A stretch of DNA of 62,785 nt, the filler included, from Dicyema japonicum (taxonomy: Eukaryota > Animalia > Dicyemida): assembly GCA_011109175.1 (NCBI GenBank). It is 8 parts of 8 records of this genome, joined end to end, with 100 filler letters (N's around TTAATTAATTAA, not from the genome) between each part and the next. Parts side by side here need not be neighbours in the genome. Positions count along the whole stretch, not along the records: positions 13,059 to 25,511 come from RDEW01000014.1; 7 more parts are not named here. One strand, 5' to 3'. A model generated the notes under the pieces. It was not told the DNA's origin and ran no database searches. It saw only the letters and a list, made by a program, of their open reading frames with translations. Shown here one piece after another: positions 21,438 to 25,393 of this stretch (positions are counted from its first letter, which is position 1; every line of letters starts with the position of its first letter). The position numbers were made by a program, and so were the translations under genes.

Positions 21438-23066
21438 ATGGGGAAAAAGACTGCAGTAATAAACAAATATAATATATTAGACGGAAGACTTTAACGTACT
21501 CTTTGAACATTCAGCTGGTTATGCTATATTCAAAGTGAAAGAATTTGAAGAAATTGCACTACTCCTTCCTCAAGTAATGAGCGGACATTGTGACCTTGGA
21601 AGACTCAATTCAGTCATTAAATTAGTGTCTTTTACTCCCTTTACATCTGCTATCAATGCACTGGACAATATCAATGCTGTTAGTGAAGGTAATTGATATT
21701 ATAATTTCAGGAGTTTTGCACGACGATTTGAAGACTATACTTTCAACCTTTTTGCCTTATGTGAAGCATCATCACAATGTGCTGGGAGTGGCAGACCATA
21801 GACTTGCTTCTGCTATCTCCGACGAACTCCCAATCAGATGTGTTACTTCTGAGGCTGTTAATGAGACAATCAGAGGTATTTATTATTTATATGTGGGAAT
21901 TCGACTGTTTTTTACTAAATTTGTTGAGAAAGTGAATCCCCATGTGGAGACACGTTCTCAATTGGGTCTCTCTCATTCATATTCCCGTTCAAAGGTCAAA
22001 TTTAACGTAAACAGAACCGATACAATGATTATTCAGAGTGTGTGTTTGTTAGAACAACTGGACAAAAATATTAATACATTTTATATGAGGATTAAGGAGT
22101 GGTACTCATACCATTACCCTGAATTAACTTCAATTATAACTGATCCCTTCAAATATGTGCAAATTGCTAGTATAGTGGGAGACAGGAATTCATTTAACGT
22201 TAGTGATGAAGATATTAGGACTAAAATAACCCAAGTTACTCAAGATGACGATTTAACTGAACAAATTTATAAGACTTCTCAGTACTCAATGGGTGGGGTT
22301 ATTTTTTTAGTTTTTAGGGGTTGAACTCAGTCCAATTGATATTGAGAACCTTAATTTATTCACAGGTGAAGTGGCTGCTCTTTGTGCCTATAGGAAGAAC
22401 CTACAGCAGTATCTTGATAGGAAAATGTCATTGACAGCCCCCAATCTGGCAGAAGTAGTGGGTTCTTCGTTGGGGGCTCGTTTGATATCCCATTCAGGAA
22501 GTCTAACAAACCTGGCCAAGCACCCATCATCAACCATCCAAATAATGGGAGCTGAGAATGCTCTCTTTAAGTATTATTATTGTGATCACCAAAGGGCTAT
22601 CAAAACTAAGGGTAAAACTCCTAAATACGGACATATATTCCATTCTACATTCATTGGAAGAGCTGCTCCTTCTGATAAAGGAAAGGTTGCCAGGATATTG
22701 GCTAATAAATGCTCGATCGCTTCAAGGATTGATTCCTTTTCAGGCATTCTTACTGTTTGACTTGTAGATTTACCTACTAATGTATTTGGTAAAAAATTGA
22801 GGCAACAGTTGGAAGATAGATTAGAGTTTTTTAGTGGGGGAGAATTTCCACGTGCTAACATTGAAGTCATGGAGGAAGCTTGCGTTGAAGCTAACAAAAT
22901 GAGACAAGAAATGGGAGATGACGGGTTAAAAATTGACAGATCTAACGATAGTACAGAACAAATTAGTAAAAAGGTCAAAAAATCCAAGAAAAGAAGAGAA
23001 AATAGTGAACTTAATAGTAATTCAAATAAAATGACAAAATCGGATCTATCATTTACGTCCACGTAA
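21438..23066 (+). CDS. NOP56: Nucleolar protein 56 (box C/D snoRNP core protein), 7 exons, 6 micro-introns
   Basis: Spliced product [31 protein letters not shown]...NAVSEGVLHDDL...[19 protein letters not shown]...[16 protein letters not shown]...[16 protein letters not shown]...[23 protein letters not shown]...K-rich tail. Introns: 21456-21480, 21689-21710, 21876-21896 (GT-GG), 22293-22317, 22571-22594, 22744-22767 (GC-AG). Confidence 0.95.
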
Positions 23067-23169
23067 AATGTTTTACATTTAATCAATTTAATGACGATTT
23101 TTGTTTGATTAGATTTTTTGTATAATTATTTAAATTGTAATAAATTAATTTAATTTAAGCTAGTTAGTA

Positions 23170-25393
23170 ATGGTGCAAAAGTATAAGTTTGCTGTTACTG
23201 TTTATCATGAATCCTTCGAGTTTGTTATGAAGGTATTTATTCCTTTGATATCAGGCTTATGAACGGAGGTTTCCAAAGACAGAGTACATTCCAGTCTTCC
23301 TTGGAAGTGAAATACTAGAAGAGAATAGATCAGAAGACGGATCACTCCATAGAGTTGTGAGAAAATGTTCAATTGCCATAGATGTTCCTTTTATGATTAA
23401 AAAAGTAAAATTTATTAGTTATATCTGATTATTGGTATTGATCATGGTTACTTTATCCAAACTAATGTTCTCGATATGAAAGATCGTACACTCACAATAG
23501 TAGGTCATAACGAGACCTTCAGCTCACGTATTCTTGTAGAGGAACAATGCAAATACTATGTTTAACCACTAGTACTTTTATTAATGTTAGGTTCATCCTG
23601 AAAATCCCAATTGGACATGTTTTGAACAGCAGGCATCCTTAACCATTTTCAAATTCTGGGGGTTTGAGAAAAATATAGAGAAAATTGCAGTTAAACAGTA
23701 CTTGAAGAACATTGATAAGGCAGTCCTTACTGTTACTTCCAGGGAAAGGAAATTATGCACATTTTCATAAAACAACTCCATGATGAGGGTATATCCAGTG
23801 TCCCAGTATGGCAAAGTGAACTTTCCTCCAACAAAAATCTTACAAAGACCGTTTCCTTAAAATTAGAAGAATGTGAGGATGAAAAGTACACCACTCTTGA
23901 TTCTGAATACATTCGACGATACATTGGTTCTCTCAATTCTATGACAGAGAACTGTTTGATTGAGCTGTATGACTCTCTTCGTCCAATTTACCACGAAAAG
24001 GTTATTTGTTGTTTCATCCTTAGCTTCCTAGTTACACTGTTTTATTCAGATTCCTCCAGGTTACGGAAATGTCTGTGGGGAAGGCTAAGGAAACGATTCA
24101 GCACTCCATTGCCTAGAGGAAAGCCAACGAAATTGATAAACTATACGAAAACTACATTCCTAATCCCCACGTGGTCAAATATTTCACTGCTGCCTGGCAT
24201 AGAACGGATTTGAGTTAATTGTATATTTATTAAGATGGGGCACCTCTTTTGTTGTTTTCTCTGTCAAAGTTGGATGTTAGAGGACTTTTAAAGTCCGTTG
24301 GGGAAGAAAAGATAATAAGACACGTGACATTCATATGTGAAGAGACTCTTGTGAAGATTAGAACTGCATGTGAATTGCCGAATGCTTCCCCAATCCTGTA
24401 AGCTATCAGAATCTGAATAATAGGGGAATAACATTGTTAGTGGACATTGAGGGACTCAGTCTAAAGCAATTATGGAGTCCCTGGATTAGTTTGTTGATGA
24501 ATGTGATTGATCTCTGTGAAGCTAATTACCCGCATTGTATCAGCAATATTCTAATAACCCGTGTCCCGAATGGATTTCCACTCATATGCACAATTCTCCG
24601 TTCATTCTTCGATAAACTAATTCACACGAAATTAGCAATATTTCAATCCAGTGAATTATCTCTGATTAATCAATACATTGAATATGATAATATCCCTAAA
24701 TTCCTTGGAGGTCCTTCTGATTCTGGGATTGACTCGATGTTGGAGAAGAATATTGTCCCCACTGAATTGTACTGTAATGGAAACTCTGATAATATTCTGG
24801 ATGATGACAAGGGAAATACCATGGAGACTCATAGAGGCAACAAATTATGGTCTACCTCTCTATATAGATCCGTATATTTAAATAAAGATAATCCTCATGA
24901 GGTTGAGATCTTCTCATCTTTAGGTTGTCTTTGAGGCATCTTCAAACGATGTCCTTCGTTGGGACTTTGATGTGTTGAAGGGAGATATTGTTTTTACTTT
25001 GTTCTTTGTGCCTCAGTCCAATGAGGAATCTATATGGTCTAAATCTAAGCGATATTCTTTTGTTGGAATCAGTAATGGAATGTGTCCATTGAGGGTTCTT
25101 AAACACTCCCATGGACTTACTCCAATTCTTTCCCCTATTGAGACAAGATCTGGTTGCAGTCTTCAGGTCCTACTTTTATTAATTGTAGGATTCATTTGAG
25201 GTATCATCTAGTGGGTTTTATGTACTGCAGTGGAGTGCCCTTTCTAATACTAATTTTATTCAATCAAAGAGTAAATTTATGTATTATGCTGAGGTCATCA
25301 AGAGGGATGATATAAGGTTATTTGTCATTTGGCACATTTAGAGGATCAATGACTAGTCTAACTGGTTCTTTTACTGCTTCATCTAATTCGTAA
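23170..25393 (+). CDS. SEC14L1: SEC14-like 1 / real-time type protein (PRELI/MSF1 + CRAL-TRIO + GOLD), 11 exons, 10 micro-introns, one in-frame TAG
   Basis: Spliced product [28 protein letters not shown]...[17 protein letters not shown]...[11 protein letters not shown]...LVDIEGL...EANYP...[12 protein letters not shown]...GFYVLQW...KFMYYAEV...RGSMTSL. Introns: 23233-23254, 23405-23427 (GT-TG), 23560-23590, 23720-23742 (GC-AG), 24001-24023, 24214-24234, 24398-24423, 24902-24923, 25167-25188, 25317-25341. TAG at 24114-24116 means it may be a pseudogene. Confidence 0.9.

Follow-up and report, generated by a model that had tools for sequence, protein, structure and literature searches.

Dicyemids have been known since 2007 to carry introns of about 26 nt, at positions that are conserved (PMC2222250; PMC6543705). 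In myxobolids and in Dicyema japonicum, donors are cut down to GTa and acceptors to AG, weak As near the intron end are putative branch sites, and the pyrimidine tract is missing (PMC13644364). That 2026 study calls it an open question how the spliceosome, a complex of several megadaltons, recognizes an intron of 21 nt, and a term search found no mention of non-AG or GC ends in it. Here we analyzed positions 13059-25511 (record RDEW01000014.1) of a 62,785-nt stretch of D. japonicum DNA (assembly GCA_011109175.1), referred to as the window, in which NOP56 and a SEC14L1-like gene lie head-to-tail at the end of the piece, with 103 nt between them. An earlier sequence-only reading of this locus had listed sixteen tiny introns in the two genes and proposed that they are recognized by length and branch-to-acceptor distance rather than by consensus; its remark that tiny introns as such are known from dicyemids and myxozoans is borne out by the three studies cited above. 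We find that one of the NOP56 introns ends in GG and is used in that form in a transcript.

The evidence for splicing comes from X5, a 1340-nt contig over positions 21541-22996 from a 2017 run, which belongs to another sample and study than the 2019 DNA runs. Aligned to the window, X5 leaves gaps of 22, 21, 25, 24, and 24 nt, which correspond precisely to introns 2-6 of NOP56, so that all five covered introns have been removed; NOP56 intron 1 and all SEC14L1 introns lie outside this coverage. Five sequencing runs contain the stretch, none of which is registered as RNA, and the run of X5 is tentatively labelled DNA. X5 represents a transcript after splicing, or at minimum something copied from such a transcript. 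The sequence-only reading had left room for an untranscribed locus, and the absence of introns 2-6 from X5 establishes that NOP56 is transcribed and spliced. A purpose-written simple spliced aligner, used with an unrelated intronless NOP56, returned the same five introns.

The central case is NOP56 intron 3 (21876-21896, 21 nt, GT-GG). The 21-nt transcript gap can be placed in three ways (GG-TG, GT-GG, TA-GG), and AG occurs in none of them. The nearest downstream AGs would make introns of 53 or 57 nt, and the in-frame 57-nt version, tried as a canonical ending, is ruled out by the length of the RNA gap. If retained, the intron would add seven residues in frame and without a stop. Spliced alignment recovered the GT-GG intron with four of five further NOP56 homologues, and forcing canonical ends turned it into a false insertion of seven residues. 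The acceptor is the same in X4, an unspliced DNA contig that spans both genes fully and has 34 base differences from the window. The intron position coincides with that of an 80-nt GT-AG intron in Xenopus laevis. That this intron ends GT-GG without an AG and is used in the transcript is solid.

The other transcript-supported introns are NOP56 intron 2 (21689-21710, 22 nt, GT-AG), intron 4 (22293-22317, 25 nt, GT-AG), intron 5 (22571-22594, 24 nt, GT-AG with AAG at the acceptor), and intron 6 (22744-22767, 24 nt), the candidate branch A lying at -7, -9, -7, and -8 from the 3' end, respectively. Their positions are all shared with pineapple, those of introns 2 and 4 also with Xenopus. Since introns 2-6 occupy positions found in Xenopus or pineapple, they are ancestral introns that shrank, and the introns are most likely ancestral U2-type spliceosomal introns reduced to about 23 nt. 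NOP56 intron 1 (21456-21480, 25 nt, GT-AG, A at -9) precedes the RNA coverage and is required to join the ATG to the NOP5NT exon, as an in-frame stop would otherwise intervene. In two eukaryote contigs (ENA ERZ27235093; SRR24948432), L006 (212-235, 472-501) and L008 (2360-2380, 3032-3052, 3434-3455), GT-AG introns of 21-30 nt are predicted in NOP56 as well, at positions that differ from those in the window.

Both gene models, which like all their introns are on the plus strand, were examined with domain and structure searches exon by exon; exons were joined for the frame check and for classifying base differences only. The NOP56 gene (21438-23066) has 7 exons, with Pfam NOP5NT and Nop detected per exon and NOP56 as the top PDB matches, and intron removal gives a frame of 495 aa. 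The SEC14L1-like gene (23170-25393) has 11 exons, with PRELI, CRAL-TRIO, and weak GOLD matches in the per-exon Pfam searches and SEC14-like PDB matches, and its 661-codon frame contains one internal TAG (24114-24116). This codon stands at a Trp position and is TGG in the DNA contigs X2 and X4, so the TAG is either a null allele of the window haplotype or an assembly error. The haplotypes differ by about 0.8%. Under the gene models, 22 of the 30 exonic haplotype differences are synonymous (p 4e-8 against a 25% expectation), which supports both frames and favours reading the window as a genuine second haplotype. X5 differs from the window at 12 exonic bases, every one identical to the X4 allele. 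A near relative was not found by homology in 50% protein representatives, 90% clusters, or metagenome contigs, the best match reaching 47% over an exon; the named homologues came from plants, fungi, Xenopus, a fluke, and protists. The GC content of the piece (36.7%) equals that reported for the D. japonicum genome, which has 1.24% heterozygosity, 4% gaps, 49% repeats, and SSPACE scaffolding (PMC6736024); for the myxozoan Henneguya salminicola the figure is 29%. The years of the runs, 2019 for the DNA and 2017 for the transcripts, agree with two studies by Lu et al.

For SEC14L1, the models rest on reading frame and domain continuity. Intron 2 (23405-23427, 23 nt, A at -7) is modeled as GT-TG, with the same acceptor in X4. 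When it is removed, the adjoining exons meet at PRELI positions 53 and 54. An in-frame 14-nt GT-AG intron was tried instead and is disfavoured: it leaves three extra residues unaligned to PRELI, its acceptor scores -1.8 compared with 0.8 for the 23-nt TG, and it is shorter than the 15-nt minimum of Stentor. The GT-TG ending is therefore likely, although not proven. Intron 4 (23720-23742, 23 nt, A at -8) has a GC-AG ending that is also found in X4. An in-frame GT three bases downstream (23723) would give a 20-nt GT-AG intron and one additional Ala, but the donor context score favours the GC (2.7 vs -1.1, with a matrix from only 12 GT-AG introns), making a GC donor probable.

The remaining SEC14L1 introns are GT-AG. 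The reading frame is restored by removal of intron 1 (23233-23254, 22 nt, A at -7), after which the exon begins at PRELI position 6, and likewise of intron 5 (24001-24023, 23 nt, A at -8), intron 7 (24398-24423, 26 nt, A at -8), which leads into the CRAL-TRIO exon, intron 8 (24902-24923, 22 nt, A at -8), and intron 9 (25167-25188, 22 nt, A at -7/-8). Intron 3 (23560-23590, 31 nt, A at -7/-8) leaves PRELI contiguous at 97-98|99, and intron 6 (24214-24234, 21 nt, A at -6) takes out an in-frame stop. Intron 10 (25317-25341, 25 nt), placed by the frame model only, has As at -8 and -6 in contexts other than TNA and is the weakest-supported of the sixteen. Introns 1-4 probably match exon boundaries of vertebrate SEC14L1. 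All sixteen introns of the sequence-only reading were thus recovered with the lengths it had assigned; the median is 23 nt and 15 fall within 21-26 nt.

The donors are as degenerate as had been claimed, with little conserved beyond GY: there are 14 GT and 2 GC donors, and +5 is G in 2/16. All introns begin with G; +3 is A in 9/16, and the exonic -2 and -1 positions are A in 12/16 and G in 10/16. At the acceptor, 14 introns have AG, one GG, and one TG, and the terminal G is invariant. The window assembly indeed contains four introns that are not GT-AG (21876-96, 22744-67, 23405-27, 23720-42), but the resulting 25% share is overstated. One of the GC-AG introns has the canonical rival described above. 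In the other, NOP56 intron 6, base 22745 is C in the window and T in X4; since X5 carries the X4 alleles, the RNA proof for this intron concerns GT-AG, and the GC is either a haplotype-specific allele or an assembly error. What holds up is a single proven non-AG acceptor, with a second such acceptor and one GC donor probable. For a non-AG share of 1/16 the 95% interval is 1-28%, and for 2/16 it is 3.5-36%, in a window selected for oddity. GC-AG is the commonest ordinary exception, at about 0.9% in human (PMC4176328), and GT-AG averages 98.3% in animals (PMC7072748). Of the high non-canonical share that had been suggested as the new part of this system, 1-2 non-AG acceptors in 16 hold up; such acceptors go unmentioned in PMC13644364.

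A TNA triplet with its A at -6 to -9 occurs in 15/16 introns, as had been noted from the sequence, and at -7/-8 in 12/16; TNAY at -7/-8 is present in 11/16. The 3-6 nt that separate the A from the final two bases leave no room for a polypyrimidine tract, again in agreement with the sequence-only reading, and positions -6 to -3 are 77% pyrimidine compared with 60% elsewhere in the introns. When shuffled sequences were free to choose their best window, TNA enrichment had p values of 0.0007 (mononucleotide) and 0.002-0.004 (dinucleotide); across all window-corrected tests p was 0.0003-0.005, with about 0.001-0.002 for the 12/16 at -7/-8, 0.0003-0.001 for TNAY, and 0.0003-0.002 for TNA and TNAY at -7/-8 taken together. 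At AT-rich decoy AGs, TNA was found in 25% at -7/-8 and in 50% at -6 to -9 (binomial p 4e-5 and 3e-4), so that for these 16 introns the positional enrichment persists against both shuffles and AT-rich decoys, AT-richness having been the caveat attached to it. In the two introns that lack a final AG, the A likewise sits at the modal distance, -8 in the TTA of NOP56 intron 3 and -7 in SEC14L1 intron 2. The candidate A is anchored better to the 3' end (p 0.001-0.004) than to the donor (p 0.02-0.11, with 0.007 as the lowest value obtained), and a 5'-anchored branch position was rejected for its poorer fit. Of the proposal of a fixed branch-to-acceptor distance, the 3' anchoring is retained, but the distance is narrow rather than fixed and drifts with intron length. 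At least 14 nt always separate the donor from the A, and the models pass over internal AGs at 12-18 nt; in NOP56 intron 4, the RNA shows that such an AG, at 18 nt, goes unused.

These features probably reflect ancestral U2-type micro-introns in which the position of the 3' cut depends mainly on the distance from the branch A together with the terminal G. The U2 small nuclear RNA (snRNA) of the major spliceosome would pair with a minimal yUNAY, the A of which would branch to form the lariat. With 3-6 nt after the A there would be no real pyrimidine tract, so the cut would be set mainly by that distance and the final G. The acceptor would be the G 7-8 nt from the branch A, pairing with the first G of the intron in the active site. 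An A at -2 would be preferred (14/16) yet dispensable, with GG or UG ends as the main product if no AG is within reach. A minimum spacing of about 14 nt between donor and branch A would account for the skipping of AGs at 12-18 nt. The first and last intron bases are known to form a non-Watson-Crick pair required for catalysis (PMC13326754), which fits the invariant terminal Gs and makes the mechanism plausible. So does the behaviour of yeast lacking Prp18, which activates BG acceptors as well as sites no more than 10 nt from the branch (PMC10711555). The stripped-down spliceosome proposed in the sequence-only reading is a conjecture; myxozoans with equally short introns keep U2 snRNA, U2AF1, and U2AF2 (PMC13644364).

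Several observations weigh against this mechanism. It is drawn from only 16 introns in a window picked for looking odd, and only one non-AG acceptor is supported by RNA, through a single contig from another sample. The branch points are candidates inferred from a motif, and the standard deviation of the A position (0.8) is partly a product of choosing the A nearest the mode. The A-to-end distance tends to grow with intron length (Spearman 0.51, p 0.054), making the ruler a soft one; such growth has also been reported elsewhere (PMC13644364). Moreover, the ordinary spliceosomes of vertebrates also process rare GT-GG and GT-TG introns, such as those in BANP and GNAS (PMC4176328). In a stronger version, which we consider less likely than not, GG, TG, or CG would form the end of several percent of this animal's introns, and these would be constitutively spliced because the spliceosome has lost or altered its acceptor-proofreading parts (Prp18/Slu7, U2AF1, the Prp8 pocket) and places the 3' cut with a 7-8 nt ruler from the branch A; standard annotation would have overlooked them.

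These could instead be ordinary dicyemid micro-introns with normal AG fidelity, the non-AG ends being isolated cases of erosion that drift has allowed to persist, comparable to the GT-GG of BANP, and their density a sampling effect. The choice of the window for its oddity fits this explanation, as does the weakening of two of the four exceptions on inspection; the GT-GG intron, which neither shifts the frame nor contains a stop, could be spliced poorly at little cost, and the published D. japonicum logos show a conserved AG (PMC13644364). Those logos, however, are blind to non-AG ends because the annotation used TopHat and AUGUSTUS (PMC6736024), TopHat being unable to place non-canonical junctions (PMC4176328). 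Even under a rate of 0.5%, and before allowing for window selection, finding two non-AG acceptors among 16 introns also has a p of 0.003, and the contig assembled for NOP56, an essential gene, has the spliced form. We regard drift as rather unlikely, if the most credible of the rivals to the distance-based mechanism.

Much less probable is that the non-canonical ends stem from assembly error or from DNA and RNA of different individuals, with an AG in the transcribed allele. The window haplotype does contain two features missing in other contigs, the nonsense TAG and one GC donor, and X5 is from a different sample and study. Yet the independent DNA contig X4 spans the stretch with the same GG, TG, and second GC, the 12 exonic differences of X5 all match X4, and the mostly synonymous differences mark the window as a real haplotype. 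We give still less credence to the idea that the minor (U12) spliceosome, or a non-spliceosomal route guided by structure, removes the odd introns. U12 introns tolerate odd ends and have a short branch-to-acceptor distance without a pyrimidine tract. A resemblance of constrained introns to them has been noted (PMC2483917). None of the 16 introns, though, has a U12 donor (RTATCCTT) or branch site (TCCTTAAC), the four odd introns show no stable fold (z +1.3 to -1.3 vs shuffles), and they resemble their GT-AG neighbours. An Rfam search of the analyzed piece gave no match and no snRNA.

Some further features of the piece were recorded. The 103 nt from the NOP56 stop to the SEC14L1 start (23067-23169) are very AT-rich and offer little space for a 3' end and a promoter; co-transcription or trans-splicing of the gene pair is conceivable. 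The alignment of the transcript contig ends at 22996-23026. A 90-nt contig from the run of X5 aligns twice to an A-rich stretch at 22967-23026, which may reflect variation in the length of a short tandem in the lysine-rich tail of NOP56. Tandem duplications whose copies are nearly identical (134-215 nt, 97-99% alike) lie at 17366-17751, 18957-19387, and 21020-21411, with a single N at the joins (17567, 19172, 21221). Such a single N between copies we take to be an SSPACE-type scaffolding join, and the three duplications are probably artefacts of overlapping contig ends rather than biology. By eye, broken fragments at 13579-13932 (+), 20205-20619 (-), and about 16300-17150 (+) resemble non-LTR retroelement proteins, with C-terminal and endonuclease-like motifs, and the pieces of them tested against Pfam gave no match. 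A 75-nt unit occurs in two tandem copies, 85% alike, at 15130-15279.

If the acceptor A is dispensable in a natural animal system, what branch distance, the terminal G, and U2AF each contribute to the choice of a 3' splice site becomes separable, and annotation restricted to GT/GC-AG would misbuild genes in such genomes. The closest counterparts are the ultra-short introns of D. japonicum and myxobolids (PMC13644364; PMC6543705; PMC2222250; PMC6736024), with which the introns described here share a length of 21-31 nt, ancestral positions, a GTa donor, a two-base acceptor, a weak upstream A, and a tiny or absent pyrimidine tract; what differs is that the branch candidate resolves to TNAY at -7/-8 and that one GT-GG is supported by RNA. 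The 15-16 nt introns of Stentor coeruleus (PMC9505925) likewise combine a near-fixed distance from branch A to 3' end with a weak branch consensus and GU...AG ends, but their length is invariant with the A at -6 in more than 95%, whereas here length varies from 21 to 31 nt and the A from -6 to -9. Vertebrate U2-type introns in BANP, GNAS, and TSPYL2 have the same GT-GG and GT-TG pairs, and the GG of BANP similarly arose from AG at a conserved position (PMC4176328). Those vertebrate cases comprise 184 sites genome-wide, mostly alternative and in long introns with full signals, while the non-AG introns here are apparently the main product, are 21-23 nt long, and in the GT-GG case have no AG nearby. 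The BG acceptors of Prp18-deficient yeast also keep the terminal G, lose the A at -2, and include branch-proximal sites, but represent a mutant phenotype at low usage (PMC10711555). In Fritillaria borealis, an animal U2 spliceosome again accepts non-GT/AG ends (PMC13326754), yet 95% of its introns are non-canonical and its U2AF is duplicated and divergent, in contrast to the piece described here, where 12-14 of 16 introns are GT-AG and those tested for position are ancestral. What is new relative to these systems is a transcript-supported GT-GG micro-intron, apparently the main form, which occupies an ancestral position in an essential gene, together with a probable GT-TG intron in the adjacent gene and a sharper branch motif.

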